Below are positions 13,572 through 62,846 of a stretch of DNA of 64,000 nucleotides, piece after piece. Positions within the stretch are counted from its first letter, which is position 1, and each line of letters starts with the position of its first letter. Both the position numbers and the translations under genes were made by a program. Below the pieces are notes generated by a model that saw only the letters and a program-made list of their open reading frames with translations, was not told where the DNA came from and made no database searches. The stretch spans positions 8,435,241 to 8,499,240 of the forward strand of contig OZ316899.1 in NCBI GenBank assembly GCA_973895155.1, given 5' to 3'. This DNA comes from Marsupella aquatica (Eukaryota > Plantae > Marchantiophyta).

Positions 13572-14231
13572 TCAAATCCAAGATATGTGGCTCCTAGCAG
13601 GAGTGCCTAGTGTAGGGTCAATGTCATGCTCAGGACAGTAAAACATCCCCTTCTTGGGCTGCCCATGCGTTGAGTGATCCCAAATTGTTCGATCATGGGC
13701 AAATCCCCTATGCTGGATAAACAGCAGGCAGTCCTTGTGCCATGCCTTAGGACACCTCATGCACTGAACCAAAAAACCATTAGCCCCATCATTGGGCCCT
13801 TGTCCACAAGTAAGACAAATATGGAGTCCACATGATGCTGTGCTAGGAACCAAACACTGCCGACAGTAAAACCGGGCACAGAGAGGGTCTGGACATTTTC
13901 TTACCTCTTCACCAATTTTTCCAAACACATGGCACTTAAAGCAAGAATGTTCATCATTCTTGCAATCAACACAAAGCCATTCTCCAACATGGCCATCAGC
14001 CAGGGATATAGTTGGGCATAGCCATTGCTGACCCAAAGGACAGGAAACATTCTTATGGAAATGTCGGTGGCAAGGCCCATCACAAACAATGAGATCCCCT
14101 CCCTCATCACAAATCGCACATACATGTAGACTATTCTGGTTAATCTCAATGTCTGAATATAAGGCCAATTGAGGTGCTTGAGAGGATTCACCTCTGCAAT
14201 GATTCATGGCCTTCTGCTTATTGCGAGCCAT
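13572..14231 (-). CDS. Intronless EDM2-like composite PHD-finger protein (219 aa) with an H3-tail-like N-terminus, carried by the CACTA
   Basis: ATG in accATGGCT context at 14231. CAICDEGGDLIVCDGPCHRHFH...CGLHICLTC...CMRCPKAWHKDCL...YCPEHDIDPTLGTPARSHI matches the EDM2/NSD-type PHD array as I recall it, including the EDM2-like YCxEHxIDxxLxTPxRxH tail. Confidence 0.88.
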   Translation of the reverse strand: MARNKQKAMNHCRGESSQAPQLALYSDIEINQNSLHVCAICDEGGDLIVCDGPCHRHFHKNVSCPLGQQWLCPTISLADGHVGEWLCVDCKNDEHSCFKCHVFGKIGEEVRKCPDPLCARFYCRQCLVPSTASCGLHICLTCGQGPNDGANGFLVQCMRCPKAWHKDCLLFIQHRGFAHDRTIWDHSTHGQPKKGMFYCPEHDIDPTLGTPARSHISWI

Positions 14232-15300
14232 GGTCCTACACACTCAGACCCTACATCAGATTGTGAAACAAGAAGGAATAACAGGGTGCAGCGTGACACA
14301 AAAGAATGAGGGTGCAGCATAAAATATGACATGTAACCACAAGGGAGCAGCATAAACCAATGCTTTATGGATGGCAAAGCACTAGGACTGAGCAACGCAA
14401 ATAACCTTGGCCTATGATTGGAAGCAATCACAAATATTGCAACCTGTATGCCTTCGCCTGCTGTCCAGCAGTGCTCACTCACCCTGCCTTTTTTAAATCT
14501 GTAAGGGCAACATAGAACAAATAGCAATTGAGTTTCAGCAAAGCATTGGTTCTCAAGTTTTAAAATGGACAAACTTGTTTCATTGTCTGCCTTGTGCACA
14601 GTAGGCTAAGACCGATCAGGGCAAATAATTTATATATTCAAGTAGTGAGAGCTACAAAATTTGCTGGGACAGTTTTCTAGTTCTGGATCCTGCTGTGCTT
14701 TATATACAGCAACAACCTGAATTCAATTTTTATAGACCAGCTTTTCACCACGGCTACAACTTCAAAACAATCACACAATGAAATCATGTAGAGGCATGAA
14801 GTAAACATGGGTCAAGGCTGTGAATAAAGTTCTCACCTTGTCCCTGCATAGCATTGGGAAATTCTACCCAGAGTCTAAAGCGGGAGATACCCAGGCAATG
14901 ATCCATCCCAAGTTGCGTCAGGTCTAGGAAGGTTAGTACTCTCCTAATGTGACAAGACTTCTTCTGGATCATTCTCTGTAACAAAATTTATTTGTTTGAA
15001 GTAAACGACTGAAATCATTTGATGGCAAATTCTCCATTTGGACTCTGTGGACAGTGGGGTATAATTTTGTAAGACATTCCCACTGAACACAACGAACACA
15101 ACAAACATTGCCAAACTCCATGAACTTACTAGCAGATTCTATGTTCAATTAGGCAGCATTAAATAGACTAGCCTTCCACTCAGGCAGAAACAATCCTGGC
15201 CCACTCGGGCATTAAACAGGGTCGATCTTGTCCTTCCTGTGTACGCCTCAATGCTTATTGTATGTCATTCTAACAACATTCTTCATTCGTTTACTCAAAG

Positions 15301-15485
15301 GATTCTATTATTGGACGAGAGCATCACGAAAGGAGCAGATATAAGTAAAGTTGGTGGTAGCTGATGATGAATGATCGACTGATGTTATAATCCAAGGCGA
15401 TGACGAACAAATCGATCGTCTCCGACGAGAATTGGGTCTCATGGAAAAGGGCATGGTTTATGTGAAGGGACTGTTAGAAAAATAG
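15301..15485 (+). pseudogene. CCB1: Captured terminal exon of a CCB1-like gene (cytochrome b6f heme c-i assembly factor)
   Basis: After an AG acceptor at 15299-15300 it reads (G)FYYWTRASRKEQI*VKLVVADDE*STDVIIQGDDEQIDRLRRELGLMEKGMVYVKGLLEK*. This matches the recalled plant CCB1 C-terminus (YYWKRASRKE...QGDD...EKGMVYVKG). Confidence 0.82.
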
Positions 15486-15989
15486 GTTCTCATAATTTTG
15501 GTGACAAGTTCAGGCAGAAGGTGGCTTTTAGAATTATAGATTTATCCACTTCAACTTATGCACACCACATGAGAGGGGACGACTGTCTAAGGTCGTGCAG
15601 AACTCCTGCCAAGGACATGAGCACGTTTTTGTTCAATTCGGCGTTGGAACTCAAGCAGTACCATTCAGAGGGAAAATGACAATCAAACAATTGATAGGGA
15701 CTGTTGGAAATCAACAGCAGACAGAATGGAAAACTCGGAAGAACTTGTGCAAACTCGAGCAGTCAGAGAGAGAGCTCTAGAGAGGGACCGAGAGGTTGAG
15801 GTAATAGTCTTGTGGCAATCGAAGGGTTTGGAACTTAACATAGCAGACACAAAAAATGTATGCTAAGCAGGAGGAGAAACAGAGCAATAGAGCAACATAG
15901 CAAGAAGGCAGGGGTAGCATAGCAAAAGGAAAGAGTAAATTGAAACTATGAAACATAGCCAGATTGAAGGGGAAGAAGCGCACAACCTC

Positions 15990-16320
15990 TTGCAGCTCCC
16001 GTAGCTCCTCCCGTAGCTCCCAATGTAACCTCCCGCAGCTCCCGCAGCACGTTGACAAACGGTGAGACCTCCCGCAGCTCTTCCCGCAGCTCCTGCCTGC
16101 TGTGACCTCCCGAAGCTCCACCAATGTGACCTCCCGCAGCTCCACCACTCCTCTGCAGCTTAGTTATCCCCAATCACAGCTCGCAACTCCTTCCCAATGA
16201 ACCCTAAACCACTCCTCGCAGCCGAGCTCACAGCTTATGACCCGTAGGTTATCACCAATCACAGCTCATCGCCCTTTGCTGAGGTAGCCTCCCGCAGCTC
16301 CTTCGTAATGTATTGTCCCA
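15990..16320. repeat. GC-rich short-motif array (acctcccgcagctcc variants) on the 5' side of the CACTA genes
   Basis: Repeated cc(t)cccgcagctcc / ccgtagctcc units. Confidence 0.8.
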
Positions 16321-17779
16321 AGTCTCCTCCTCACCCACTAGTTATCATCGATCGCACGTCGTCGCCCTTCGCAGCTTTCTGAGACATATAGCTCCAACGC
16401 CAAATGCTCCGCAATGTTGCGCGACACTGCAACAATGGATTGGAGCTCTTCCGTGGTAGTAGCTCCCAAGTCCTACCGGCTCACCCTAAGCTTCCTACTC
16501 CCCTGACCGCGCGCAGCACCCTGATACAGTTTGTGGGAAGAAACGGAGTGCGCACTCCACAAAAGCTGCCTCAACTCGCAATTGAACTCAAATGCGCCCC
16601 GCACTCCATGCACATTGCCCACCGCCACATTCCTTTGATGAAAACGCGCACCTCAACCACAAAAACCCTACATTTCACGACTTGTGCTCGACTCGACATT
16701 TGCCGTTGTGCACCTCCAATGCAGATTTGTCGACCACTTTTGTTCCGAGGGCCTACTACAAGAACGCGGGAATTGGAGCACAATGTTGATTGTATGATCC
16801 AGGGTGTGATCTCAGCCGTTGGCACTTGTGTAGGTGCCAAAAATTTAATACCTCTCCACTAGGTTGGACAATTTAATACCTCTCCACTAGGTTATAAACT
16901 TAATACCTCTCCATTATTGGTTTGCAAAAAACCCAATGAAGGTTATGGTATATCCAATTTAAAGAGAGTCCTAAAGGTCATGGCTGTTTGTGTAGGTGCC
17001 AACAAGAATGTTAAGGACGCATGTTATATATAAAAAATGATGCCCGCAATATAAAAGGTCCTTTTGGACCAAGGGAAAACCTTGGTTTTCTAACTTGGTG
17101 CTCTAGAGTTATGGCTCAAAATCACATTGACACTAAACCCATAACCCACCCCTCATTTAAACAAATTAATCCTTCATGGGAGGTGAGGGTGTTGTGGATT
17201 ACATTAGTGTAATTAACTATGTACCGGCCATGGTTTTTGGGTGATAGGTTATGTCTGCAAAAATATATGCATGCATGAACACAATTTTGGACTACCTTAT
17301 TAGTCTCACCATATGATAGTGATACTCATCCAAATGTTAGCATTTAATAGCTTTCCACTCGTGACTCAATTGAGAGAAACCCTCAATCATGACTCAAGCA
17401 CATTTATAGGGCAACTATTAGTTTCATATAGACATATGTATAGTATGTGTACTTTTGTACATGCCCTTGCCAGCACCCTCGTCTAGGGCCCACTTCACGG
17501 GCCCCTTACATGCTGCATGACCACTACATATGAGGCTATGTTGTCTAAGAGTTTTTGAGAGCATTACACCAAAGCATTAACAAGTGAGCCTTCCCATGAC
17601 TATATGACCTCCAATATGCCAACATTAATGGTTTCCAATATGACAGCGTGAGTGACCCCATGTTTAGTCCTCAGATTGAAGCACCATTTAATTCAAATGA
17701 CCCAATGAACTCCCTTGTACCTCCAAAGAGAACCCCCCAATAGCCTTTGTAAAGATCACATTTCCAGTCATTTGGTACT

Positions 17780-20630
17780 TCTGACCTCTAGTATGACAAC
17801 CAAGATTACCCTAATTTGAGGTGTTTTCATTAATGACCACATATGCAGTCAATTGCTCCAAATGACCTCCAATGTGACTACCAAAATGACCATTACTGTA
17901 GTCATTGGCATTAATGACACACATTATGTGAAAATGACCCAATGAAGAGTATCATACCTCTCGGAGTGCCCCCTTACAATTCCTTTGGAATTTAATAGAA
18001 TATATCCAAAATCCAAATATCGGCACAAACATGACATAGTTATATAGAAGGACATAGTCTTCCACTAGTATTGCACTATATACCTCTTGGAGAGACAAAA
18101 ACAATTTTTGTTTGCCTTTGGAACGGATGGTATGCATGCATGGTGACACTTTTGGCAAATCACTCCAAAGTCGTATAACTTGGGAGTGATTTTCCCCAGG
18201 GTTGCATCATCCCTTAAGTAATTGCAAAAACATGGCTCCAAAGTGCTCATGGTGCAACTAGTGGTTGGAGAATAGTGGGTATAGTACCCTGCACCTTGTG
18301 GAGAGGTTGCCACCTTCATGTAGGGCCCCATGGCACACTAGGGCCACCTTAAGCTCCTAGACCCAAAAGGGTCATTCTGATGGTCCATAATGACACCATG
18401 AGGGACCTCTATAATGACCCCATATGCAGTCATTTGGCACAAATGACTTCCAAAAGGACTGCCACAATGACCCTTACTGCAGTCTTTGGCATTAATGACA
18501 CAATTCCTCCAAAATGACCCAATGAAGATTACAACACCTACTCACAATGCACCGACACTATTCATATGCAAAATGGAGTATTCCCCATCCAAACACCGGC
18601 ACAAACATGACACAATTACATCACAAGATGACAACCTTCCATTGGTGTTGCACTACTTCTTGGAGAGACAAAGAAATGGTTCCATTTGCCTTTGGATACA
18701 ACGGTATGCATCCATGGTGACACTTTTGGCAAATCACTCCAAAGTCGTATGATTTGGAAGTGATTTCCCCAAAGGTGCATTGTGCCTTAAGTAAACGCAA
18801 AAACATGTGTCCAAAGTGTTTATGTCGCAACAAGTGGTTGGACAATGATGAGTATAGTGTCCCGCACCTAGTGGAGAGTTTCTCACCTCTATGTGGGGCC
18901 ACATGGCACTCTAGGGCCCACCTTCAGCCCCTAGCCCCAAACTGGTCATTTGTGCTTTTGTTTGATGACTGCATGGGGGACCACACAAATGACCACAAGT
19001 CTAGTCACTTGATTTATATGACATCCCATATGACAGTTTTAATGACTCTACTTGTAGTCATTGGCATTTATGACACAAATTTGTCTAGAAATGACCCAAT
19101 AAAGATTACACCACATCCTTGATTGCCCTGTCACTATTCATTTGCAAAATAGAATATTCCTCATCCAAACAAAGGCACAAACATGACACAATTACATGGA
19201 AGGATGATAGTCTTCCATTGGTGTTGCACTACTTCTTGCAGAGACAAAAAATGGCTTCATTTCCCTTTGGATAGGATGGTATGCATCAAGGGTGACACTT
19301 TTGGCAAATCAATCCAAAGTCGTATGACTTGGGAGTGATTTCCCCAAGATTGTATCATCCCTTAAGTAAACACAGAAATGAGATACCAAAGTGCTAATGG
19401 TGCAACTAGTGGTTGGAGAATAATAAATATAGTATAATTTGGCACCTAGTGGAGGGGTTGCGAGCTCTATGTGGGGCTACTTGGCACTCTAGCGCCAACC
19501 TCCAGCCCTTAGCCCCAAATTGGTCATTCAGGCTTGTCTTCAATGATTGCACTAGGGACCTTTCAAATGACAACAAGTCCAGTCATTAGACTTATATGAC
19601 ATCCCATATGACAGTTTTAATGACCCTTCTTGTAGTCATTGGCATTTATGACGGGCCATTGGTCACATATGACCCAACAAAGGCCCTAGTACCTTCAAAG
19701 AGAGCCCGCAATAGATTCCTTGCAAGGTTGGAATATTCCTCTTCCCTAAACCCGCACCCACACCATAAAGAGAAGCACGACTCCCCTGCCCATTCCATTG
19801 GTGCAGCACTACCTCTTGGAGAACCTAAAAACAACTTTTATTTGCCTTTGGATGTGATGGTATGCATGCACGGTGACACTTTTGGCAAATCACTCCAAAG
19901 TCGTACGACTTGGGAGTGATTTCCCCAAAGGTGCATCATGCCTTAAGTAAACGCAAAAACATGTGTCCAAAGTGTTTATGTCGCAAGTAGTGGTTGGACA
20001 ATGATGAGTATAGTGTCCTGCACCAAGTGGAGGGGTTCTCACCTCTATGTGGGGCCCCATGGCACTCTAGGGCCCACCTCCAGCCCCTTGCCCCAAACTG
20101 GTCATTAGTGCTTGTGTTTAATGACTGCATGAGGGAACACACAAATGACCACAAGTCCAGTCACTTGACTTATATGACAGTCCATATGACAAATTTAATG
20201 ACCCTACTTGTAGTCATTGGTATTTGTGATGCAAATGTTTTTAGAAATGACCCAATAAAGATTACACTAGCTCCTTGAATGCCCCATCACTATTCATTTG
20301 CAAATTAAAATATTCCCCATCCAAACACCGGCACAAACATGACACAATTACAACAAAGGATGACAACCTTCCATTGGTATTGCCCTACTTCTTGGAGAGA
20401 CAAAAAGGCTTCATTTGCCTTCGGATACGATAGTATGCATCTATATATGGGAACACTTCTGGCAAATCACTCCAAAGGTGTATGACTTGAGAGTGATTTC
20501 CCCAAAGCTAGGTGCATCATGCCTTAAGTAAATACAAGACATGTGTTCAAATTGCTAATGCCGCAACCAGTGGGAGGACAATGATGAGTATTGTGTCCCG
20601 CATTTAGTGGAAGGGTTATCAACTATATTA
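17780..20630. repeat. ~577-bp tandem array (~5 diverged copies) inside the CACTA
   Basis: The anchor tttggcaaatc(a)ctccaaag recurs at ~18151, 18725, 19300, 19881 and 20458. Confidence 0.92.
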
Positions 20631-20699
20631 ATGACTCTACAATTATGACCGGTGTCTGGAATAACTATTGAGTATTTTAATCTTCATATCTCTTGGGTT

Positions 20700-21310
20700 C
20701 TTTAATGACTCTATAAGTAGTCATTTATGCAATAAGTCCATAATGACTATATGTTATTGTAAACATTGATATATCGTGATTTTTAGATTGACCCTATATT
20801 TAGTCATTTATGCGACAAGTCTATAATGACAGTATGTTGTTGTAAACACTGATATATCCTAGTTTCAGTATTGACTTTGGAGTTAGTCATTTATGAGAGA
20901 AGTCCATAATGACGGTATGTTCTTGTAAATACTGATATGTCCTAATTTCAAGATTGACCCTAGAGTTAGTCATTTATGAGAGAAGTCCATAATGATGGTA
21001 TGTTCTTGTAAACACTGATATGTCCTAATTTCAAGATTGACCCTAGAGTTAGTCATTTATGAGAGAAGTCCATAATGATGGTATGTTCTTGTAAACACTG
21101 ATATGTCCTAATTTCAAGATTGACCCTAGAGTTAGTCATTTATAAGAGAAGTCCATAATGACGGTATGTTCTTGTAAACACTGATATGTCCTAATTTCAA
21201 GATTGACCCTAGAGTTAGTCATTTATGAGAGAAGTTTATAATGACGGTATGCTATTGTAAACACTGATATATTCTCATTTTCAGATTGACCCTATATTTT
21301 GTCATTTAAC
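20700..21310. repeat. 83-bp tandem array (~7 copies) in the CACTA subterminal region
   Basis: agttagtcatttat recurs at 20881, 20964, 21047, 21130 and 21213, with degenerate flanking copies. Confidence 0.95.
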
Positions 21311-21699
21311 ACCGTTGGTTAAAATGACGGAAATACATTTTTTGTCATTTATCACCGTTGTCCAAAATGACCCAAATAAATTTTTGGTCATTTCAATCAT
21401 TGTTCAGAGTGACTTTAATGGTGCTAAACACTGATTTATCATTGTTGTTATTAATTGCGTCATTTAAGACATGTGTCTAAATTGACCATTTAGGGAAATT
21501 GGGTCATTTTGGTCGCATCAGTCATTACAAACATTATACAAAATGACCCAAAAGTTAACATTTTGTCATTTCAGTCTATTGGTCATTGTGGACAGTCATT
21601 CTCCTGTCATTCTTTTTGTGTCATTAGAAATTTTGGTCATTTATTCATCTCCGTCATTGGGTGATTGGTTATAAAGGGCCCTATTTTCTTCTAGTGGCA

Positions 21700-22350
21700 T
21701 CTGGTTGTAGTTGAGACCTGAGCAATACCACGGGAACATAAGTAGGAAGCTGGCTCCCAGATATGCGGGGCCCTATTGCATCATACGATGGGCCCACAAG
21801 GATAATCCGGTTTTGGTGGTGTTGGATACACCCAAGGAAATGGGCGTGGGCAAAAGCTACCATGTTAGCCGGCTCAAGAAGTTTGTCAAAGACGATGATC
21901 CCAACTGGGATCAGGTCTTGCGTCCGAATGCCATGCTGGTGGAGGATGCTGAGGAGTTTGAGGTGGAGGCAATTCTGGACCCCTAGGCCTTCACTCCATG
22001 TAAAAGAAGTGGACCCCCTGCGATCGGGCCCTTTTCGTGTTTACCCCTTGTTATTTTTGTTTTACCATTAAAAGTTCCCCTATTACCGGTAATAATTATA
22101 ATTATTAGTTTAAAATGAAGAAAAACTACCCTTTGAGCGTTCACACGTCCTCCATGTATTAGTTAAGACTGAGGGCCCAGGGTTTTGGACCACCATTACA
22201 AACGCAAATTGGGGAGGCGAATCTTAGAGTATTTGGTGAAGTGGGCTGGCTACGACCAGGCCGAGAGTACTTGGGAGCCAGAAGAAAATTTGGGTAATGC
22301 CTGAGAGATCCTTGGAAGCTATCGTAAGCGAAGCGGCCTACCGCCATTGT
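21700..22350 (+). pseudogene. Gypsy integrase C-terminus (GPY/F motif) and chromodomain, split by a MITE
   Basis: KLAPRYAGPY; EEFEVEAILD|HHYKRKLGRRILEYLVKWAGYDQAESTWEPEENL after removing 21981-22190. Confidence 0.92.
21981..22182. mobile_element. 202-bp MITE, hAT-like (8-bp TSD)
   Basis: TIRs CCCTAGGCCTTCA and revcomp CCCTGGGCCCTCA (11/13). TSD ttctggac (21973-21980) vs ttttggac (22183-22190). Confidence 0.85.
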
Positions 22351-24228: not shown

Positions 24229-24236
24229 AGTGAGAA

Positions 24237-25409: not shown

Positions 25410-27180
25410 TTTTGTTAAGGATTGTATGTCCTGGCTTTCTTGGAGTAATATGGATAGCTTTTTCATACCTATTCCAGCGACGTGGTCTCTATGAGTTCCA
25501 GCAGGTAGAGGTTTTGTGAATATATCTGCCCTGTTATCCTGTGATCAAATCCATTCTACTTGTATGTTCTTGCCTTGCTGTTCTTACGTAAAGAAGAACT
25601 TGGGATCAATACGCTTGGTTCTTTTGGTTGTCATAATGCCGTTGACGATTTGGTCTATGCAGGCTTTGTTATCCTCATAGATTATTGTGGGTTTGGTTAT
25701 CTTCGACTTTCCCGTGCTGGTCCTGATGTGGTTAATGATACTTCGTAACCATAGGGCTTCTCTGCATGCCTCGTATAATGCTATGACTTCAGAATGATTT
25801 GATGATGTGGTTGTCATCGTTTGCTTTGTGCTACGCCAAGATATTGCAGTCGTGCCTTGCAAGAAGACATAGCCAGTTTGAGATTTTGAGTCTTGGGGGT
25901 CAGATAAGTATCCAGTGTCTGTGTATCCGATAAGGTTGTCGGGGCTGTCTTTCGAGAAGAAAAGGCCCAGGTCGGGGGTGCCTTGGAGGTACCTAAATAT
26001 CCTTTTGATGCCATTCCAGTGGCGGATTGTCGGTTGTGCGCTGTGTCTTGCAAGGAGACTAACTGAGAATGAGATATCAGGCCGTGTGTGATTTGCTAGG
26101 TACATTAGCGCTCCCACAGCAGATAGATAGGGTTTTTCCAAGCCTAATATAGGTTCGTGATCTTGTCTGCGTCTGAACATATCTTTTGCTGGGTCAAGGG
26201 ACCGGAGTTCCATTGGTGTGGAGACCGGGTGTGATAGGTGCATGTTGAACTGTTTGATAATCTTTTGTGTGTATGTTGATTGGTAGATAAAGGTGCCATT
26301 CTGGAGGTGCTCAAATTGTAATCCTAAGCAATATGTTGGTTCGCCCAGGTCTTTCATTTCGAACACTCCTTTCAGGGTTCTGATAGTCTCTTTGATAATT
26401 GTGGGTGTCCCAAACAGGTTCACATCGTCGACGTACAGTGCTAATATAATGAATTCGTCGTTCCTTTGTTTGATAAAGAGACATGGGGCAATATTGTTGT
26501 TGGTGAATCCAAGGTTGATCATCTCTATTTTAAACTTCTTGTACCACATTTTTCTGCTCTGTTTAAGGCCATTTATGGAGCGTAATACTTTTACGGCTAA
26601 TGTCGGTTTGTCAGATCCTGTATTTCCAGGGGTTTTCTTATGCTTGTCTTGTGTATGTCCACTGTGCATAAGGAGCATTTTAACCGTTTCATCAGGTATG
26701 ATCTTTCGTATACCCAACTTGATATCTGGGCTCAGGTTCTGGTACGTCTCCCCTTGAGTATAGTGTTTCACTCTCTGGATCAATTTGTGAGGTGCTTTCA
26801 TGTAAATGTCTGTGTCCAGAGTGCCATAAAGGTACGCAATTACCACGTCCATTAAATTGTTGATAAGTTTATGTTGTATGGAGAAAGTAATAAGGTATCT
26901 GTATGTGATCGCGTCCATGACGGGTGAATATGTGAGGTCATAATCCCTGCTTGGTATTTGTGTATACCCTTTGGCTACTAGTCTTGCTCTGTATCTTATT
27001 ACTTCTCCTTTCGCATTCCGTTTTCTAATGAATGTGAATCGGGATTCTGTGTAGTTGTTACCTGTGGTGCCGGTATAAGTGGTCCGAAGACCTGTCTTTT
27101 GATGAGGGCGTCCATCTCCGTGTTGATGGCCTCTTGCCATTTCGGCCAATCTGTTCTTTGTTGAGCTTCTTTCATAGTAA
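25410..27180 (-). pseudogene. Copia reverse transcriptase plus RNase H
   Basis: RYRARLVAKGYTQ, LALYVDDVNL, FEMKDLG, TRPDISFSVS, GYTDTGYLSDP, SSNHSEVIAL and IYEDNKAC. Confidence 0.95.
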
Positions 27181-53049: not shown

Positions 53050-56000
53050 ATGTGGTGGATTGGGAGATTGCGCAAGTTCTTGGCATTCGGTGGAATGAAC
53101 ACGGTGAATCAGGCAGGGAAGTTTTGGGGCTGTTTGCTTGAAGAAGCAAGGCAGATGATACCTACGTATGAAGACGTTGAGCCAGAGCGCGTAGCCAGAG
53201 AACGAGCGGAGCTTGTACAATTGTGGGGAATTCACAAAATGGCATTCGTAGATACGGAGGAGGTGTTGGAAAAGTTCTCGTGGACACCCACAAGTGCGAA
53301 GCTTGACGAATTGCTGATTCGGGAGAATAAGGTCGTGGGGATTAGAGAGGCAATCAAGAATGCAGGGCGGCCACTTTGGGAATTGAAGAGTCACACTGCG
53401 AAGTGGACGAAGGAAGCTATTCTTGGGGAGTATTCAGGCGCTGAAGAGATGAAGCGCAAGGGAAGTTCGGCATCCGCAACTCCAGCAAAGCAAACTAGGT
53501 CAGAGAGACCAATCAAGATGGAATCTGGGCCAGTTAGAGATCGGGCCGTAGAGGATAAAACCATGACAGTGTGGGCGGACAGGTTACTTGCCGATTTACA
53601 ATTACAGTTTGCAAGAGATGAGGATGAGGTCGTCAGTGCCGTCCAGGATAATAAATATGCAGGATATATTAATGACACTGGGTTGGAGGGCTTTGTCAGG
53701 TTGTCCTGGAGGATGGTAGACATACCGGATGAGGATCCGTTGGACTTTGTGGGATGCTGGGAGGCTTCTTCCAACACGACGCTGTTGTATGGAAAGGTGT
53801 TCAAACTAACACCTGCGCTTATCGAAGCCGTCTTTGCTTTACCAACAGGAAAGAAGACTAAGGTGGATCAGAGGAAGATGTTGTCGGATGACCAGTTCAG
53901 GTCATTTCTAGGGCCGTCCACTAAGAATGGGTTTTTTAGGAATCAATGTACCAACCCGCATATAGGGCAGCTGATTGATTTCCTGAGAGTCACGTTGCAT
54001 TGTACCTTGCCGAGAGCAGAAATCGGCAAAGCCCAGGTATTTTTGGTGGAGAATATTGATGCAAGCCGAGACTACAACGGCTATCTCTTAATGCGGTTGA
54101 AGAAGGCATTAAATGAAGAGAAGCAGAGTATTGGGGAGGGAGCAGTATCCAAACTACGGTACCATCTGCAATTACTTTGCCGATATGCAAGAAGCCAGTC
54201 TTTTGCACCGGTGTTGCCTATACAGGAGCGGATGCCGATCACTGCACCACTTGAGGAGGTGGAGGAGGGAGGAGGACAAGGAGCCTCTAAGCAAACAACG
54301 CCACGGGAGGAGGTCGGCAACACCGGCAACACGAGAACAGGAGCATTCCCCGATCAAGGAGCCAGAGGTAGTAACATATGATGTAGTGAGAAATCCGTTG
54401 CATCGGCCTACTCGTAATAATCCATATGCAGGCATCCAATTGGTCAAGAGGAAGATGACTACCAAAGAGAGAAAGAAATATGACGAGCAAATGGATTCAG
54501 AAACAGATGAGGAGGTAAGCCGAAGCCAGGAGAGGCCGGTATTAAGAGCTTCTAACAGAGCCCAAGTGGAGGGACCTGTGGAGGAAGGTCAACCAGCAGC
54601 AGCCCAACAATATTCGGAGGAAGAGATCGGGGGCTTTGGAGGAGAGGCCGGCATGCTAGGTAGTCAGGTTAATGTGGATGATTACGACGATGACTATGTC
54701 GATCACAGGGAGAGGCCGGTACCAGGAGTTAGAAAGATGGAAAGGTTTTGTAGAAGACTTCCCGTAGTCTTCTATGGCAAGCCGGAGGACCAGAAAACCC
54801 TAGAGTCTCCTCCACCGGACGTGACACCATTGGAATTTGACCAAATGAAGGAAGCCGAGGCAGGTCTGAAGGAGAAACTCGACGAGTGGAGGGCCCGAAA
54901 TGACATGCAGGAACGGCAGCTACCAAGCGGTGATTGACCGGAGGAAATAAGACGGCTTAGTGAGAAGCAGGCCGAACCTCTCACTGACTTTGATCAATTA
55001 CGGGCAGAAGCCTGGGAGAAACGGCCTCATTGGCAGATGCCAGTATCACATGGCAGGTCAAAATATGCCAGGGATCGGGCTAGGGAGTATGGAGACATGT
55101 GTGGACTGCTCGCCTTAGAAATCTTCGGCAATGAGTTAGAATCCGGACCATTTCTTAGAAAGGAAATGGTTGACCAAACAAGATTAGAGGAGGCAATGAC
55201 GTTGGAGCGATTAAAGAAAGAGGAGGTAATCGCTCGGCTTTGCTCCATGGAAGCCGAAGTTGCTAAGACAAAGTCTGGTCAACCAAATCAGCAGGATCTC
55301 TTGGCTAAGCAGCATGAATTGGAAGTGGCGAACAACCAATTGGAAAACTACCAATTGGATAACCAGCAGATCAAGGAAAAATTGACGAAGGTAGAGCTGG
55401 AGTTAGCCAATTCAAAAGTAGAAGTACAGGGTCTAAATCGCCAAGTCAAGAGGCTCAGAAAGACGGCTAAGGATCAGGCCACCCAGAGCAAGAAGGCCTT
55501 GGCAGAAGCCCAAAGGAAGTATGACAAGTTACTCGACCGGTTGGAGGCCATGCGTGAGAAGCATGATGACGCCATTTGCACAGCCGCCAATGATCACCTA
55601 AGCCGAGTCCAACAGATACGCAAAGAGCTTTAGGAGGAGCTAACCAGAACAAAGCAGGCATGGACGGACAAGGTCACAAAATTGGAAGGCATCAACGATT
55701 CCCAGAGAGCCGCTTTGGATAAGCAGGAGTTTGAGATTGTGCAGATCTTAAACGAGGAGCTCAAGACGGCCAAAGAGGAGGCTGTAGTATTGTATTAAGG
55801 ACATAAATCAGCATTTAATGCCTAAAACTCGGTATTCGTTCCCATGGAAGAACATGTTGGGAATGGTTTTCTATCAATTAACACTTATGAATGACTAAGG
55901 TGTCGAAAACACAAAGGTGAGCCTTTTACTATGGATGCTCAGCAAGGCATAGATTTAAATGTTTGCTTAACATTATAAATACGATTAACAAAATGGAATA

Positions 56001-58224
56001 AATTAACAAAACACAAGAAAATCTTGAGGTATGATGAGGGAGTCTGGAATAGACCAAGGTAACTCCTCAACAACACTTAATTTGTGATGATTTAAGGTGA
56101 AAAATCCGCAAGAACATTTCTGGAATGAAATACTTTACTAGGATGATTATTTAAATGCCATCAACATATCTTAACCTTTCCTTCCAAGGTACTCAGTTAG
56201 GATTAATAACCAATCACTTCAGCATCCAGTCGGTACTCCGAGTCACGAATAATGAACACCATCATCGTCAAACTAAAGTCATAGGTAATTGGTCAATAAC
56301 ATTCTTTGCATCCCGTGCAAAAGCAATGTCATGCCAAAAACTTATGCATCAAGAACTTAGAAATGTATAGCCTTCACCAATTAAGGAATCTATCTCCATA
56401 CATTCAAAAGATTTCATCATTTCACAAGGTTTCACTTCTCTGGTTTGATCTCCAACATTCAAACACAAGGAAGGGGGAAGAATTTCTTTGTATTAATCAC
56501 TCATGCAAATACAGAGTTTCTCTCTACAAAGTGAAGCCTTGTCATGCTGCAAATTTGCAACATAGTGCTTACATAATTCTTTCACACTTCAAATGACATA
56601 AATTCTACTTTATATAGGCTGGTAGAAACCCAAGGAGAGAGAAAATGAAAGGACATGCCCTTTCATGCCTCAAGGGTTCTTGAACTAAAGTAAAAATAAC
56701 AAAGGTGTGCTACAGTAGTACCTAAGGGTCACATGAGGGTTCCTGGTATATAAAACTAACCAAAAGGTATTGCAAATGTGAACTAATGTAAAAGTGACAT
56801 TAGGGTAAAACTAATGAATAGTGGCTTTGTCCTAATTTTAGTTTCTAAACCAAATATCAGTTTGAGATGAAACGTTCCCAGAGTATTCTCTTAGGTATAG
56901 TCTTCATGCTGGTAAAATCTCAGACTTTTCTGAGGTGCTTAGGTACTTCAATAAAATACCAAAAAGTACCGGAAATAAAGAACTACAGAAAATCGGAAAA
57001 AATTCTAAGTGTTGAAGGCATAAACGCGTATACACGTAAAAGCGTAAACTCGTAAAGACGTAATCGCAGTGCAACAAAAACTTAGCAGATTCAAACATTT
57101 TTAACTTCCTAGCTATAAGTCGGCTTGAGCTGAAACTTTCAGGGATGATTCTACTGCGTAATGACTACCTCCTGAAAAAGTATGAAACTTTTCTGACCAT
57201 GTGAACTATTTAACTAAAATATCAGAGATCGGCTGATCGTGGTAATTGCACACAGAGCTCATTTTTGATGAAGTGCTTTGGAGTCCGGTTCTTGAATCTT
57301 CTAGTCTGCATTGCTTCTCCAATGATGTCCAGTCTTCTTTCTTGGTAGCATGCAAAGAGCAAGGATTTATATGGCGATCCTTGTCCAATAGAGGCAATAG
57401 CCTCCGATGAAGCATAACATCAGGTAAAGTGTTCAGTTGATCTAAATTGCTACAAAAGGTAGCTATATTACACCTTTGAGTTAGAAAAAGTTCAAAATTT
57501 ATAAATTTTCCATCATTTCCAACTAATCTACTGCATTACAGAGGCGCTCCGGCTTAATGAGGAGGTTGAGGATTTATCCCAAGAGCTGGAGGAGGCCAAA
57601 GACAAGATGATTGGCTTGCAGAGGCGTGTAGATAACCAAACAGAAAAGTTGCGAAAGTATGTCAAAGCCGGGCACGGATCACCAACTGGACGGTCTCCCG
57701 CTAGTGGCATGGTCGTCGGGAATACGGAGATGTCGAAGCCAACATCTATTTTGTCAAGAGTAACTGGGGGTAAGGCAATGCAGTTGGTTGCGGATCTGGC
57801 CAAAACATTCATGGGGCCAACACGTACTTCTGGGGTACCCCATAAAGCCACGCCAGAAGAGGTCGAGAGTATGGCCGCCCACATTTGTGGGACTGTTGCT
57901 ACAAAGGCAGTTGTGGTAGAGATAAGTAATGTCGATGAACTTGGAGCTGCGGTAATAGGTTTAGACACCGGAACAGCCACCATGGACTACCAGAATGTGA
58001 AGCCGTGGAAGATCGATACAAAACATATTGGAGAGCGGGCTTGGATTGAGGAAATAAAGGCCATTGCTATCCAAGCCGTTTCCCAGGAGGATGCCGATGC
58101 AACAGCCGATGCCGGGGCCGACAAACCAGAACTCAAAGTCGAGGAAGCCGAAGGGGTCAAGCTAGAGCCGATGGCAGGAGAAGGTGCAGAGTCAGAAGAT
58201 TCGGACTTACCCCTTGTCACCTGA
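53050..58224 (+). pseudogene. ~1100-aa accessory protein (Transposase_32-like domain plus long coiled coil); frameshift, stops and a nested solo LTR
   Basis: GLEGFVRLSW...IEAVFALPTG...TKNGFFRNQCTNP; coiled coil at 55200-55780. The frame resumes AKEEA|LRLNEEV after the TSD. Confidence 0.8.
55783..57540 (-). mobile_element. 1758-bp solo LTR with perfect TSD GAGGC, related to 30943-34964
   Basis: gaggc|TGTAGTATTG...CTGCATTACA|gaggc. It shares aaactcggtattcgttccc, atttgaacttttt and gacttatag(c/t)taggaagtt with the 4-kb unit in reverse orientation. Confidence 0.93.
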
Positions 58225-61050
58225 CAATTAAGGAGGGCCAGTCATCGGTTGGAAGGAGGACGTGGCGGCAGGAGAAGGGCTTGGGCCAGAAGGGTGCGGC
58301 CGTTGTAGGATGGGACAGGGCAAGTAGCGCCCTGTCGGCTTAGGTAGTATTAGATGCTCGGTTCACACAGGGTTTCGGGCTAGTCAAGTTTTTTAGGTGA
58401 TAGTTTTTTAGTTGGATTATCGCGGTGGAAGGCCGTGAGTTGTGGTTAGGATTTCCGCCTTTTCCCCTGAATGCGCTGCAAGGATAAAAACCTGGGCAGC
58501 GTGGCTCGAGGGATTTTTCTTAGTCAAGACTCTAGTGTAAGTCAGTATTGCTAGCATACAGCTCTCGGCTAAATCTAGACCGCGGATTATCAGTAAACCA
58601 CAAATTTCCATGTCTGTGCAATTGTTTGAATTGAGTTGGTCTTGTTGCCTAGTTCGCAGATTCTTGCAATCATGGCGTTGTGTGTTGGGATACTTGTCGC
58701 TTGATCGATTTGAGTCAGTTAGAGCGATATTGTGAAGGTATACGATCGCATTGTCTTGATTAGAGACTGCCAAACCAAACTCTGAGAGAAAAGTGAGGAT
58801 TGAGAGTGTTTAGTCGGTGAAGTGTGGGTTGAGTCAGTCTGAAAAAGACCTTCAGCCGGCTTAAGAAATTAAGCCGTAGAGGTACATTCCGGGGGCGGAA
58901 TACAAATATACCTGTAGAAGTTAAAGAGGAATTAGGTGTCTCAGTTGTGCACAATTCACAAGCCCAGTGAAAGAATCGGTCCGGTAAGTGTGGATCGAAG
59001 GAGAGGATCGCATTTCCAAACCGAATAGCTGCCATACGGCAAGAGGACGGACATAAACGAGTGGTTTATGATCGACTGAGGGTAGTTCTTGGGGTTAGAG
59101 GTCTTGGAAAACGCGCCACAAGAATGCCTTCAATCAAGGCAATCATAGGCAACTTCTTCCTCTCTTCCTCCTTCTTTCGTTGCTCCTCCCGATGTGGTCT
59201 TATCTCATCTCATTCCTCTCTCCTCCTCTTCTTTTCTAGGGCAGCAGGTGAGACTACTCATGCCTTGGCCCTCTCCTCCTTCTTACGCTTCTTCTCTCTT
59301 GCCTTCTGTGAGCTGCACTCCTTTGCTCCTCCTCCCTTGCAATGTTCCCTGCAGCTACTCCCGTTTGCAAGGCTTGCCCTAGGATTGCACTCAAAGAAGC
59401 AATCCCTACTGGTGTAGTCAAATCTAAGCGGCTCAACTGTGCTACATTGAGGTGCTCAGCCATCAAATCGGTCCATCGATTCCTCTCCTGCTCCCCATTG
59501 CCTTCATTCCCATTGCCACTGTCACTCACCCCTGCCCCATCACCTCCATTTGCTCCACTGGAATCCATAGCTAAGCCACCCCCGAGCGCGCGTGAGCTCC
59601 CTTCTCCCTCCCTACGCTTGAAATTTGTCAAATGCCGCTGAGTATGCCGCGGCCGAGTGCTAAAGTACAAGCGGGAAAGACTTGCGAAGCAACCCATTTT
59701 GCAATTTGCGATTCTTCTCATTTCGCATGTAGTTTCTCAATTTTGCGAAACCATTGTGACGTGAAAGGCTTTGCAACACCTTTGCTCTCTCGCAGAAATG
59801 CTCTCGGGCTCTGTTTTTCTGAAGGTCGTGCGAAAGCAGATGCTTTGCAAAACTCAATTCTAATTTGTGATGGTATTTGCAAAGGAAGTGGCTTCGCAAG
59901 ACATTGGCAACTCGTCCTGGGGGGAATGTTGGTTTCATTTGAAAGGGTTTTTTTCAAAGGTAAGTGGACCCCTCTATACTCATATTTGGAATTCTTTTTG
60001 GCCATGTTTTGGGTGTTAGATAATACTTGAAGGCGGGTTTGAAGGGTTAGGCAGGTTAATGGGTTATGTATGGTGTTGGTTTAGGCTAAGGTTTGGGTTT
60101 ACATTAGTTTAGAAGAAATAATAAAGGTGTGGGATTTGGTTTACAAGAAATAAGTAAGGTTTGGGTTTAGGGTTTTAGGGTTTGGGGTTTTTAAATAGAA
60201 AGGTCTCTAGGGTTGAAGAAAGGTTTGGGTTTGTGTGTAAGTCAGATTTAGGTTTAATAGGTAGGATGCGGTTTGGGGTTGGAGGTTTGGATAAGACAAA
60301 GCAAGGTTTCATGAGATTTATATTGCAGCCTTTTGGGTTTAAGAGAGGTTCATTGGGTTTATGAATCAAAAAGGGATTGGCAAGGGTTTTGCTAACAAAG
60401 GAGGGGAATATATGATAGCTTGCAGGGTGCGGCACTTTTTGATGATTTGATACTAATGCATATGCATTGTGAGAGCCCGGGCATTTGAAAGGTAAACATT
60501 GCATGATCGGCTCAAGTGTTCATTTCATGTACTTAACACTTTTGGTTGCCACTATGTATAAAGGGGACATGTATATAGGGATGTTTGTTCTTGTCTGGTC
60601 CAGATTATTGTGCTTACATATACATGGAATGCTTGCAGCTTTTCCCTCATACTTTCAGATTGGGTTCATTCATTATCTTAGAGCCACAAGACCTATTGGC
60701 ACTGCTGAGCCCGGGTCTCATAAAGGTACCTTTTTTATTGCTATGGTCATTTTGGTTTGGGTTTCTTGTCATCATTATTTGGGAACTTTGATTTATATCA
60801 TTTTGTGGTATGTTTTGGTCATAACATGCCCATTTTAATTATATTTTGTTACAGGGGATATGTCTTCATCTTCTGAAATCTCCATCACAGACTCGTTCTC
60901 CTCTGATGAAGATACACCTCCTCCACCTCAACATCACACGACCAGTTCAGTCAAGGTGGAATCAAGTCAAATATACTCTGTCTACAATGACATCATCACT
61001 CATTTCAGACCTGTGACTTGGTACCCTCAAGTCCCAAGGTAGGACTTGTG

Positions 61051-61797
61051 TGTTTCATTTAGGAAAATAAATGCAGGGTTGTGCAAAAAAACTCCAAAGA
61101 CTCACCTGAATTTCAATGATCAGAAAGACCAGACCCCTTTCTATTCCAAAGCTAGGTGATCAACAATGTCATTTCTCAGCCAAAAATGGTTAACCTTGTT
61201 GTTAATTTCAGCTGTTGTAGCAAGGAACTCCAACCATGGCAAATTTCCCCTATTCACTCTTGTTGAAGGAACCCTTAAATATGGAGGAAAATTCTCATTT
61301 CTCTCATCCTCAACAATCATATTGTGGAGGATGACACAAGAAAGAAAAATATTTACTATGTTCTTTTTGTACCAAGGCCTGGCAGGCCTCTTCACTATCT
61401 CAAATCTAGCTTGGAGGACCCCAAATGCCCTCTCCACATCTTTTCTTGCTGCCTCCTAACATCTTGCAAAATGCTCAACTTATCAGACTATGGCATGTGC
61501 ACAGTGGATATGAACATGGACAACTCTGGATAAATTTCATCCACCAACAGATAAGCTTGTTTGTACTCCATACTATTGACATGGAAACTGACATTGGCCA
61601 AATCATTATGCAACCATTCATTTAGAAGTGGTGATCGGTCAAGCACATTCAGGTCATTATCTCCCCCAGCCAGCCCAAAAAAGGCATGCCAAATCCACAA
61701 TTCTTGATTAGCAATTGCTTCCAATATGATGGATTTGTTCTTGTCCTTGTCACTGTATTGGCCTTGCCAAGCAACATGACAATTCTTCCATGCCCAC
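61051..61797 (-). pseudogene. PIF/Harbinger transposase C-terminal fragment
   Basis: WAWKNCHVAWQGQY, IILEAIA..LWIWHAFFG, NDLNVLDRSPL, YLLVDEIYP, ERAFGVLQARF and CVILHNMIVEDER. Confidence 0.9.
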
Positions 61798-61937
61798 CTT
61801 GTGGTCCACCCCGTCAACTTTGTGAATGTTCCAGATGTATGGGTCAGGTTTCCCAAAAATCTTACATATGTGCCCAACATATTGAGAGATATGGGCGTTG
61901 TGGAAGTCATACGGCAAGGGCTTCTTCATCTCATATG
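61798..61937 (+). CDS. Probable N-terminal Zn-motif exon of the CACTA #2 transposase
   Basis: LCECSRC...CAQHIERYG resembles YCPCVNC...LHVIKHG of TnpD #1. It ends at a phase-0 donor ATG|GTAAGT. Confidence 0.65.
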
Positions 61938-62120
61938 GTAAGTGTTATGCCTTAGTTTTCCTACCCTATTCCCATTACTCAATGGTTGAAGGTTTTTAAT
62001 TTCACACCTACTTTTGTTTGTTTTGGTTTTGGTGGAATAGGTATCCAATAGGCCTAGAACTGCGGCACAAGCACCCTATGTCCCATCACAAGGTGTTCTA
62101 GATGCTATAGGCAATGAGCC

Positions 62121-62846
62121 TTGGGTCTAGCGGCAAGGGCCACTAGTCCTAGGGAAGTTGGGGTTGAGGCTATTGTCCCAAGAGGGAGAAAGCGTTCCAA
62201 GAGGCGGGCCGGAGGGGATACTGATTTGTACAAGGCAGTGGTTACGGGTAGGTGGGGTGGTTGTGAGTTCATTGGCAGATGTGTCCCTATCATCAAGGAC
62301 TGGGATCTTGAGACTCTTGGTTTGCCACAACAACTTTCCTACGGTGAGGAGGTAGAGGTTTGGGGTAGACGTTGGGTTATCAAACCTTCCACACTTGGGG
62401 ATAGACATGGCTATGGAGTTTTTGCCTGTGAGGACATCATTGTGGACGCCGAGAGTGGTAGAGGTGGACGCGGCCGAGAGGGGCCTACTTTGTTTCCTTA
62501 TGGTGGACCCATCTACAAGAGAAGACATTGGAACATGATCCTTGCACAACACCCTGAGTGGAAGACTTATGCATTGGACATGGATACTTTTGATGGAAAC
62601 ACTACAAGGTATAGTGAGCAGCGTGTCATAGATGGGGACCCCATACGGACTGGGAATATTGCTGGTTTCATAAACAGTACCGTGGGGACTCACCCTAAGC
62701 GTAAGCAAAATTGTGAGTGGGATTTCATTGAGGGTCCTCCGCCAGCACCTTATGGCCAGACATATCATCATGACCATTGCCTAGTTGTAGCGACGAGGAC
62801 CATTAACTCAGGGGATGAGTTATTTACTCACTATGAGTGGGATTAG
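62121..62846 (+). CDS. SET-domain (lysine methyltransferase-like) exon
   Basis: IKPSTLGDRHGYGVFACEDI, PYGG, IDGDP..GNIAGFINS, and VVATRTINSGDELFTHY*. No in-frame ATG precedes the domain. Confidence 0.88.
   Translation: MGLAARATSPREVGVEAIVPRGRKRSKRRAGGDTDLYKAVVTGRWGGCEFIGRCVPIIKDWDLETLGLPQQLSYGEEVEVWGRRWVIKPSTLGDRHGYGVFACEDIIVDAESGRGGRGREGPTLFPYGGPIYKRRHWNMILAQHPEWKTYALDMDTFDGNTTRYSEQRVIDGDPIRTGNIAGFINSTVGTHPKRKQNCEWDFIEGPPPAPYGQTYHHDHCLVVATRTINSGDELFTHYEWD

Follow-up and report, generated by a model that had tools for sequence, protein, structure and literature searches.

A window of 64,000 nucleotides from the genome of the liverwort Marsupella aquatica carries two CACTA elements, each with a chromatin-domain gene beside its transposase gene. 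Element #1 (4679–21696, minus strand) is complete, 17,018 bp long and nested in a Ty3/Gypsy integrase region, the coding sequence of which picks up again from 21711. It has CACTAG inverted ends (CACTAGTAGAAAA at 4679 and, on the opposite strand, CACTAGAAGAAAA at 21696) and is flanked by a 3-bp target-site duplication, GCA, at 4676–4678 and 21697–21699. Motifs of the GTCATTTTGG type are present at both ends, and a subterminal tandem array of seven copies of an 83-bp unit (20718–21308) lies at the 5' end.

The transposase gene of this element, TnpD #1 (9005–12971, minus strand), has its own ATG and encodes an N-terminal zinc finger. Its product matches Transposase_21 and DUF4218 past the Pfam cut-offs, and DUF4216 and Transpos_assoc below them. 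A premature in-frame stop at 11688–11690, already noticed in the original prediction, lies inside a single tblastn alignment to the transposase of locus L008, which spans it. Further downstream, a conserved ORF (7188–7688, minus strand) shares 33% identity with the ORF that follows TnpD in L008; a Pfam search with it gave no significant family, and it is possibly a TnpA-like second gene.

The accessory gene of element #1 is an intact stand-alone ORF of 219 codons (13572–14231, minus strand) that encodes a triple PHD module of the EDM2/NSD type and ends 600 bp upstream of TnpD #1, within the inverted ends and the target-site duplication. The predicted layout, an open PHD-reader ORF upstream of a co-oriented TnpD, thus holds, with the orientation corrected to the minus strand. 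The reading frame is open over 13572–14243, with 14231 as its conserved start codon (ATG), in agreement with the homologues P0001 and P0002. The product matches PHD_NSD (1.3e-7) and PHDvar_NSD (4.9e-7) past the Pfam cut-offs and PHD-1st_NSD (3.5e-4) below its own; against the PDB, it matches NSD3 PHD1-3 at 1.5e-9. A Foldseek search with its AF2 model (pLDDT 79) returned PZP modules, the H3-tail readers of JADE1 and BRPF1, and NSD PHD5-C5HCH folds. An open ORF of 219 codons beside a TnpD of about 1300 codons with one stop is unremarkable by itself, and the weight of the case lies in the comparisons across loci.

A split SET gene in the second element

Element #2 (50558–64000, plus strand) is represented by its 5' part and continues past the end of the window. 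Its 5' end, CACTACAACAC, matches those of the copies in Calypogeia fissa (L001:5144) and Sphagnum (L002:3788), and is followed by subterminal motifs of the form TTGCGAAG...CGCAA and by conserved 5' segments at 51594–51707, 52167–52761 and 59142–59415. Between the last two lies an extra segment of about 6.4 kb (52762–59141) that is absent from the Calypogeia and Sphagnum copies and is probably a nested insertion; its large ORFs gave no significant Pfam match (one weak hit to Fez1 fell under the cut-off) and no PDB match.

The first exon of the SET gene is interrupted. Its first part (60860 to about 60934, plus strand) contains the start codon and a Ser/Asp-rich leader (MSSSSEISITD...PPPPQ) with N-terminal counterparts in P0003, P0041 and L002. 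It is followed by a fragment of about 0.86 kb from a Harbinger/PIF transposase (approximately 60935–61800, minus strand), recognized by Pfam Plant_tran in the ORFs 61488–61910 (2.5e-36) and 61141–61437 (1.5e-18). Homology to L001 and L002 starts again at 61801, and the second part of exon 1 (61801–61937, plus strand) encodes a CxCxxC...H zinc finger of the transposase-associated type, which hhalign aligns with the Transpos_assoc region of TnpD #1 (probability 86.6%, E 4.5e-6). Plant TnpD transposases normally carry such a zinc finger at their N-terminus. Exon 1 ends in phase 0 at the donor GTAAGT (61938).

Exon 2 (62041–62846, plus strand) begins after the acceptor AG at 62039–62040, encodes a linker and the SET domain, and terminates at a conserved stop (62844–62846). 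Since its entry frame runs into a TAG at 62127–62129 and the SET ORF (62121–62846) is in a different frame, a frameshift lies at about 62100–62126; in the homologues, exon 2 is one open exon. The SET ORF itself is open and matches Pfam SET with 28 bits (cut-off 22.4). The first TnpD exon (63021–64000, plus strand, cut by the window end) starts 175 bp downstream, open right after the acceptor AG at 63019–63020, so that the predicted position of the SET ORF just before a co-oriented TnpD was correct. The premature stop reported in this transposase was also found, at 63774–63776, where the Calypogeia copy is open. The description of both effectors as stop-free is accurate for the PHD and SET ORFs and fails for the SET gene as a whole. 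Both window copies are dead, with stops in TnpD #1 and TnpD #2 and a SET gene that is split and frameshifted.

The SET domain is atypical. In its NH(S)C motif, serine replaces the histidine of the Asn-His pair found in canonical SET enzymes, and the domain may lack activity or act on a substrate other than histones. A profile search recovered no solved structure by sequence, and the AF2 model was unusable (pLDDT 41).

Gene order, selection and origin in bryophytes

The PHD and SET genes belong to two unrelated CACTA (En/Spm) lineages of mosses and liverworts, here lineages 1 and 2. Linkage was counted in loci that carry the accessory gene. In lineage 1, PHD followed by TnpD occurs in four lines of descent (the window, L003/L004, L006/L007 and L008) at protein identities of 40–81%; in L008 an ORF with a BRCT domain lies between the two genes, which are thus not always adjacent. 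As a control, TnpD was found downstream in none of 30 other PHD loci, each with at least 2 kb of downstream sequence. In lineage 2, the order zinc finger, SET, TnpD is shared by the window, Calypogeia fissa (L001), Sphagnum (L002 and L097), L009–L011, L013 (Riccia sorocarpa) and L014–L016. Copies of this lineage are near-identical between Sphagnum species (95%, S. fallax versus S. jensenii); Sphagnum alone accounts for about 980 cluster members of the SET protein, the variants of which number hundreds and are spread over many chromosomes.

The exon structure of lineage 2 is equally constrained. The SET exon sits between the zinc-finger exon of the transposase and the TnpD exon, an arrangement that is new here, and all junctions are in phase 0. 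The GTAAGT donor of exon 1 is conserved, the SET and TnpD exons each open straight after AG in five lineages, and in all five the SET exon ends with a stop. In L009 and L014, conserved coding sequence precedes the first Met of the TnpD exon, and in Riccia the zinc finger and SET domain form a single continuous ORF. Because the SET exon lies between the other two, joins them in phase 0 and ends with a stop, we infer alternative splicing to either a ZnF-SET protein or a ZnF-transposase; at the sequence level, lineage 2 appears to be a single transcription unit.

The original prediction had named confinement to a single copy, neutral evolution and near-identity to a host gene as signs of mere capture. 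We found gene order kept in divergent bryophyte copies and dN/dS well under 1 (0.13–0.17 for PHD, 0.21–0.30 for SET), with no bootstrap replicate reaching 1 and dS among the compared loci ranging from 0.75 to saturation. The PHD homologues (81, 70, 43 and 40% identity) have start and stop in identical positions and invariant zinc ligands. Identity is 83% in the PHD ORF versus 72% in its spacer, and 83% in the SET core versus 54–59% in intron and spacer. In the tree, the stand-alone PHD proteins (n = 10) group in a single clade, separate from the EDM2-like proteins (SH-aLRT 98; stem length 0.83); the nearest host-type PHD proteins, in another clade, are only 35–42% identical. No host-type SET protein was recovered in searches with the SET sequence and profile, the profile search returning only bryophyte or metagenome proteins. 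The ends and duplication around the PHD ORF, the conserved order, the low dN/dS and the lack of a close host gene among these results all support the predicted status of the two domains as parts of transposons; this support does not extend to the anti-silencing toolkit of the original prediction, which is a candidate function. On these comparisons, we regard both ORFs as genuine accessory genes under selection, acquired long ago and not recently captured.

Possible roles on chromatin

CACTA elements do capture gene fragments, and the decay of both window copies would suit a Pack-CACTA origin in which PHD and SET are chance pieces of host genes without function for the element. However, order and ORF limits are kept down to 40% identity in three bryophyte genera, the splice architecture is conserved, dN/dS is 0.13–0.30, the PHD proteins are monophyletic and distant from those of the host, and no close host SET was recovered; a single capture in one recent family is countered by the dS values. 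We therefore reject passive capture as highly improbable. It is barely credible that these are host genes merely adjoining transposase genes, or domesticated host transposase-SET fusions: Sphagnum and Riccia annotations do call them ordinary ‘SET domain-containing proteins’, but the hundreds of variants on many chromosomes, the location within CACTA ends and the differing decay of the copies argue against it. The chromatin-domain genes are real working parts of these transposons rather than host-gene debris, with a putative effect on chromatin.

The best explanation, to which we give a probability of about one half, is that the accessory genes of the two CACTA lineages, with alternative splicing in lineage 2, serve anti-silencing in a broad sense. 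In lineage 2, joining exon 1 to exon 2 would yield a ZnF-SET protein of about 345 aa, and skipping exon 2 to join exon 1 to the TnpD exons would yield the transposase. Sharing the targeting domain of the transposase, ZnF-SET would be brought to the same DNA or partners, namely copies of its own element, where its targets would be lysines in chromatin proteins. In lineage 1, the separate 219-aa protein, a predicted H3-tail reader with no catalytic part, could serve as an adaptor or competitor on the element's chromatin. As the most likely net effect of these activities, we infer that copies of the family can still be transcribed and can still transpose under genomic silencing.

Insertion targeting and self-repression suit the anatomy equally well. 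ZnF-SET might be an alternatively spliced repressor of transposition that competes for sites, writes a repressive methyl mark and limits copy number, while the PHD protein promotes or stabilizes heterochromatin on the element. A common zinc-finger exon followed by mutually exclusive exons is the plan on which truncated repressors derived from transposases are built, the 66-kDa and KP proteins of the P element among them, and most characterized SET enzymes that act on transposons write repressive marks; yet the lineage proliferates well, as its Sphagnum variants and the near-identical copies of S. fallax and S. jensenii attest, and we consider self-restraint unlikely. Alternatively, the PHD protein, and possibly ZnF-SET, could tether the transposase to a given histone state and steer insertion to safe or favourable sites, much as RAG2, a separate PHD-bearing partner, couples a transposase-derived recombinase to H3K4me3. 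Such targeting would be consistent with the PHD finger of Rehavkus transposases (PMC6446971), with the similarity of the PHD model to H3-tail-binding modules and with the nesting of element #1 in another transposon. However, a single insertion is uninformative on preference, no surface for interaction with TnpD was identified and the BRCT ORF separates PHD from TnpD in L008, which leaves this role doubtful as well.

Comparison with known systems

A close parallel is En/Spm itself, in which one alternatively spliced transcript gives two products, TnpA and TnpD, and TnpA acts on methylation of the element. The bryophyte elements share its CACTA ends, 3-bp duplication and a TnpD with Transposase_21 and DUF4218, and would also share a single unit in which a common first exon and alternative downstream exons yield, besides the transposase, an accessory protein that acts on chromatin. 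Unlike in En/Spm, TnpD is preceded by the accessory exon instead of being surrounded or followed by it, the common exon is coding (zinc finger), and the accessory part, which bears no resemblance to TnpA, is a SET domain (a PHD module in lineage 1); the splicing is deduced from sequence. VANC of the Arabidopsis VANDAL (MuDR) elements is likewise an accessory ORF beside a transposase, and the bryophyte proteins would resemble it in acting on the chromatin of cognate copies; they differ in having no sequence or domain similarity to VANC, which works by binding specific DNA sequences and by a loss of DNA methylation.

With host EDM2 of Arabidopsis, EDM2-like proteins and animal NSD1–3, the transposon PHD protein shares the composite of PHD_NSD and PHDvar_NSD, plus PHD-1st_NSD under its cut-off; the 35–42% identity is to EDM2-like proteins of Marchantia and Selaginella. 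It differs from EDM2 and EDM2-like proteins in consisting of the PHD module alone (219 aa versus roughly 800–1600 aa), and in forming a separate clade encoded beside TnpD. A PHD histone reader with or inside a cut-and-paste transposase is also known from RAG2/RAG1 and Rehavkus, of superfamilies unrelated to CACTA. RAG2 is a kelch protein that ends in one PHD finger. In Rehavkus, the finger lies within the transposase (PMC6446971).

SET genes have been described in other DNA transposons, namely HarbingerS, Phytophthora MuDR and Helitron captures, and PAG2, a DNA methylase with a SET domain, is carried by giant Plavaka elements, of the CACTA superfamily, in the red alga Bostrychia (bioRxiv 10.1101/2025.02.11.637652; PMC12730594). 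PAG2 is thus a SET-domain accessory gene in a transposon of the same superfamily; unlike the bryophyte SET exon, it is described as an accessory gene and not as an exon that shares the transposase zinc finger, and the bryophyte SET domain is not paired with a DNA methylase. The HarbingerS, MuDR, Helitron and Plavaka genes come from another host kingdom or phylum and are likened here by description. Lastly, genes for TET/JBP dioxygenases are carried repeatedly by fungal KDZ/Plavaka and other DNA transposons (PMC12730594); these too bring an enzyme of epigenetic marks into CACTA-related transposons, with a different enzyme class and different hosts.

The two CACTA elements and their surroundings

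The chromatin-domain genes carried by the two CACTA elements of the window are real and conserved, and the structure of the ZnF-SET/TnpD gene in the second element is the main new point. Pfam scans of the large ORFs identified the window as transposon-rich plant DNA, of a bryophyte on the homology evidence, containing a Ty3/Gypsy element (435-4678, continuing from 21697), a Copia element (25584-30015), a LINE (38731-42498) and, besides element 1, what is probably another CACTA element (plus strand) at the right-hand edge of the window. Nothing in it resembles human DNA or a gene of a toxin or virus. Element 1 (4679-21696, minus strand, 17,018 bp) was delimited by its inverted ends and a GCA duplication. 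The termini, CACTAGTAGAAAA at 4679 and, on the opposite strand, CACTAGAAGAAAA at 21696, are terminal inverted repeats starting with CACTA, and the 3-bp target-site duplication, GCA, lies at 4676-4678 and 21697-21699. The Gypsy flanks (435-4678 and 21697-22100) form one integrase region with the cleanly duplicated GCA between them; the integrase reading frame, broken by element 1, picks up again at 21711.

The subterminal repeats of element 1 comprise an array of seven 83-bp units and GTCATTTTGG motifs at both ends. Its transposase, TnpD 1 (12971-9005, minus strand), has its own ATG and an N-terminal zinc finger; Transposase_21 and DUF4218 scored above the Pfam cut-off, and Transpos_assoc and DUF4216 below it. 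With CACTA ends, a 3-bp duplication, a TnpD-type transposase and subterminal repeats, element 1 is a CACTA (En/Spm) transposon. Two internal duplications were also noted. The N-terminal coding region of TnpD 1 contains a 24-bp sequence repeated four times in tandem (12516-12616), read as a repeated 'PTVDVEEH' peptide, and the long 5' region (18065-20278) includes duplicated segments that encode the same peptides in ORFs 18754-19122, 19596-19919 and 19994-20278.

The 5' end of element 2, CACTACAACAC at 50558, matches those of the related loci in Calypogeia fissa (L001) and Sphagnum jensenii (L002). Its subterminal repeats are of the form TTGCGAAG...CGCAA, the N-terminus of its TnpD is 30% identical to that of TnpD 1, and its sister loci carry Transposase_21 and DUF4218. 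On these features element 2 is probably a CACTA transposon too. The window stops before the 3' end of element 2 and its target-site duplication, and no 3' ends of SET elements were found within the 10-kb flanks. A block of approximately 6.4 kb (52762-59141), with long ORFs at 53050-54381, 54113-54937, 55037-55633 and 57607-58224, is missing from the sister elements. Pfam and PDB searches with the ORFs of this block gave no significant match, one weak match to Fez1 falling below the cut-off; the block is either a nested element or lineage-specific cargo.

A stand-alone EDM2-type PHD gene

The PHD ORF of element 1 (14231-13572, minus strand) runs open for 219 codons and is followed, after a 600-bp spacer, by the co-oriented TnpD 1; the original prediction had described an open ORF just upstream of TnpD in this orientation. 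It encodes three PHD-type fingers. PHD_NSD and PHDvar_NSD scored above the Pfam cut-off, and the PHD1-3 module of NSD3 (residues 24-150) aligned to the ORF at 1.5e-9. The Cys and His zinc ligands are invariant in 14 sequences, and an AF2 model built from 14 homologues (pLDDT 79) matched the PZP modules of JADE1/BRPF1, which are H3-tail readers, and the PHD5-C5HCH of NSD. The protein is an EDM2/NSD-type composite module with the PHD1-PHD2-variant PHD arrangement and complete zinc ligands.

An exhaustive profile-free search returned 376 relatives. The best were stand-alone proteins of 166-245 aa, and the next best were long EDM2-like host proteins (42% identity to Marchantia Mp1g03210 and Mp2g00350, 35% to Selaginella EDM2). 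The tree against host EDM2 that had been proposed as a check separated the two groups: among 131 PHD modules, the ten stand-alone proteins grouped in a single long-stemmed clade (SH-aLRT 98), with the host proteins apart. Orthology to EDM2 is ruled out by the 219-aa stand-alone form, the separate clade of short proteins and an identity of 35-42% to EDM2-like proteins.

The ORF is conserved as a gene. Its start and stop positions are shared among homologues, and dN/dS lies in the range 0.13-0.17 (upper bootstrap limits no higher than 0.27). Between the window and L003, a locus of the same lineage, the PHD ORF is 83% identical, compared with 72% and many gaps for the spacer. A member of the clade is followed by TnpD at every locus with enough flank: at L003 and L004 (PHD identity 81%, DNA identity 75%), which are collinear with window 14261-12781, at L006 and L007 (43%) and at L008 (40%). 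In the control set of other PHD loci, none of the 30 with at least 2 kb of downstream sequence had TnpD there. A metagenome scan with the PHD alignment gave 80 loci; the only member of the transposon clade, L017, has too short a downstream flank, and the non-clade loci serve as a negative control only.

The L008 metagenome contig contains a counterpart of window ORF 7188-7688. It also has a 271-aa ORF with BRCT domains (L008:3587-4402; Pfam 6.7e-9), placed after the PHD ORF and before TnpD, which makes a third accessory gene of chromatin or DNA-damage type in the PHD lineage.

A SET exon probably joined to the transposase's zinc finger

The SET ORF of element 2 (62121-62846) lies, as predicted, just before TnpD, whose ORF follows in the same frame from 63021. 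It matched PF00856 with 28.0 bits against a cut-off of 22.4; among homologous proteins, P0008 (22.9 bits) and P0038 (24.9 bits) passed as well and P0003 (21.7 bits) fell slightly under. Related proteins numbered 43 in a single-sequence search and 90 in a profile search; every one came from a bryophyte or from a metagenome or run assembly, and no host-type SET family was present among either set of matches. Identity to the window sequence is 79% in Calypogeia fissa, 53-80% in seven Sphagnum species and 31-44% in Riccia sorocarpa. Searches of PDB sequences with the single sequence and with the profile gave no match even at E 10, and an AF2 model from a 27-sequence alignment (pLDDT 41) was discarded for fold search.

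All loci whose flanks are long enough have the N-terminus of TnpD behind the SET ORF (L001 and L002; L009-11, 45% identity; L013 in Riccia; L014-16; L097 in Sphagnum fallax). SET dN/dS is 0.21-0.30. Between the window and the Calypogeia copy, the SET core (83%), zinc finger (77%) and TnpD exon (78%) are conserved, as against 59% for the intron and 54% for the spacer.

The exons were searched individually, and the spliced models used were the database's own, P0003 and P0008. Both of these annotated homologues carry an additional exon at the N-terminus, whose motif is GPPRQLCxCxxCxGQxSQKSYxxxQHIxRxGRH. The corresponding exon 1 in the window runs from 60860 (MSSSSEISITD...) to 61937, where the donor GTAAGT follows, and the AG preceding exon 2 is at 62040. 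Pfam gave no Transpos_assoc match for the exon 1 peptide. A profile-profile comparison matched its zinc finger to the Transpos_assoc region of TnpD 1 (probability 86.6%, E 4.5e-6), which identifies it as the finger that TnpD usually carries at its N-terminus. The same layout recurs in five lineages: exon 1 has a phase-0 donor, the reading frames of the SET and TnpD exons both begin immediately behind an AG, again in phase 0, and a stop codon terminates the SET exon. At L009 and L014 the first Met of the TnpD exon has a conserved basic peptide ahead of it (LPKRARQ, LSRRQRV), so that this exon appears to be translated from upstream.

The simplest reading of these joins is that element 2 is one unit that would yield two products, ZnF-SET and ZnF-TnpD, by exon choice. 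TnpA and TnpD of En/Spm are likewise made by exon choice, the splicing of the SET lineage being proposed here from sequence comparison. Unlike the other lineages, Riccia has zinc finger and SET in one continuous intronless ORF (L013:10258-11751), with TnpD-like coding from about 200 bp past the SET stop and a Transposase_21/DUF4218 gene model annotated 2.4 kb downstream. The Sphagnum fallax locus has no annotated TnpD model that could show the exon joins.

The window copies of both elements are dead. The premature stops originally reported in both transposases are confirmed: that of TnpD 1 (11688-11690) is in frame within an unbroken alignment to a related transposase, and that of TnpD 2 (63774-63776) falls where the Calypogeia copy is open. 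The accompanying claim of an open effector beside a broken transposase holds for PHD; for SET it is true only superficially. Exon 1 is split at approximately 60935-61800 by a truncated piece of a Harbinger/PIF transposase (Plant_tran, on the minus strand), and the entry frame of exon 2 meets a TAG at 62127, the SET ORF lying in a different frame. An apparent match to the Harbinger ORF in Calypogeia (L001) was rejected as a conserved Harbinger fragment; it is an antisense reading of exon 1, and arose because the minus-strand Harbinger ORF of the window runs on into exon 1.

SET methyltransferases are recognized by the motifs GxG, NH(S)C and ELxxxY. HGYG and ELFTHY are present and conserved in the transposon family; of the NH pair, N185 is invariant and is followed by Ser rather than His in the window and most homologues. 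Judged on these motifs, the full catalytic and cofactor set of the SET lysine methyltransferases is incomplete, with NS for NH, and the replacement of the canonical Asn-His by Asn-Ser counts against catalysis.

The Sphagnum SET clusters hold approximately 980 member sequences on many chromosomes, and Riccia sorocarpa has more than a dozen entries. In P0008, P0010, P0018, P0040 and other clusters, and in P0333-P0370 of Riccia, the transposon gene is annotated as 'SET domain-containing' or hypothetical. Hundreds of Sphagnum and Riccia 'SET domain-containing protein' entries are thus transposon genes that inflate counts of host SET genes, and they should be excluded from host chromatin genes. The S. 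fallax (L097) and S. jensenii (L002) loci share 95% identity across 6.5 kb that take in ZnF, SET and TnpD. Within Sphagnum, the family has either been active recently or is shared through recent ancestry.

Possible roles in chromatin and comparison with known systems

The PHD and SET genes are transposon accessory genes under purifying selection. Passive Pack-CACTA capture, the alternative considered in the original prediction, is ruled out: the genes occur in several divergent lineages and genera rather than in a single copy, the searches found no close host relative, and dN/dS, expected to lie below 1 for a working part, is 0.13-0.30 over both.

Their mechanism and the direction of any effect on chromatin are inferred. 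Placed on the transposase's own finger, a SET domain would be delivered to whatever that finger binds; for a free EDM2-type reader, the targets would be modified H3 tails. We favour a role in keeping the chromatin of the family permissive, because both lineages proliferate and because EDM2 lets transcription pass through heterochromatin. Self-repression by an isoform resembling a truncated transposase would fit the anatomy about as well, and so would steering of integration, as with the PHD of RAG2. A bolder, tentative reading has a probability of roughly three in ten: bryophyte CACTA elements would have twice, independently, built in a histone-mark module, in one case an alternatively spliced SET domain on the transposase's targeting zinc finger, acting as a transposon-directed writer, and in the other a free EDM2-type reader. 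Both lineages would be actively reprogramming chromatin at their own copies, and for the SET lineage there may have been horizontal movement between peat mosses and liverworts as well.

The last point comes from synonymous divergence. Among the SET exons of the window (62121-62846), Calypogeia fissa (L001:10330-11166) and Sphagnum jensenii (L002:10348-11145), dS is 0.78-0.95, which looks small for groups that diverged in the early Palaeozoic. Since the divergence is only of this order, the element may have passed horizontally between mosses and liverworts that live in bogs.

Bryophytes silence many transposons by H3K27me3, in addition to H3K9 and DNA methylation, so a transposon-borne writer and reader would offer a direct handle on the contest between element and host over silencing marks. 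SET genes are known in other DNA transposons, namely HarbingerS, Phytophthora MuDR, Helitrons and, as PAG2, the red-alga Plavaka elements of the CACTA superfamily (bioRxiv 10.1101/2025.02.11.637652; PMC12730594). Rehavkus transposases have PHD fingers inside (PMC6446971), and fungal CACTA-like elements carry TET/JBP genes (PMC12730594). In the literature searched, Repbase reports being outside it, we found neither a CACTA element of land plants whose SET exon shares the transposase finger nor one that carries a PHD gene of the EDM2 type. The functional paradigm is VANC, which causes sequence-specific loss of DNA methylation and reactivates cognate copies; sequence similarity between VANC and the PHD and SET genes is neither expected nor seen. 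To our knowledge, few transposon-encoded factors act on chromatin, and VANC alone is understood. To these the present elements add two further candidates from land plants, both of clear anatomy: a SET domain apparently delivered by the transposase zinc finger through exon choice, and a free EDM2-type histone reader.
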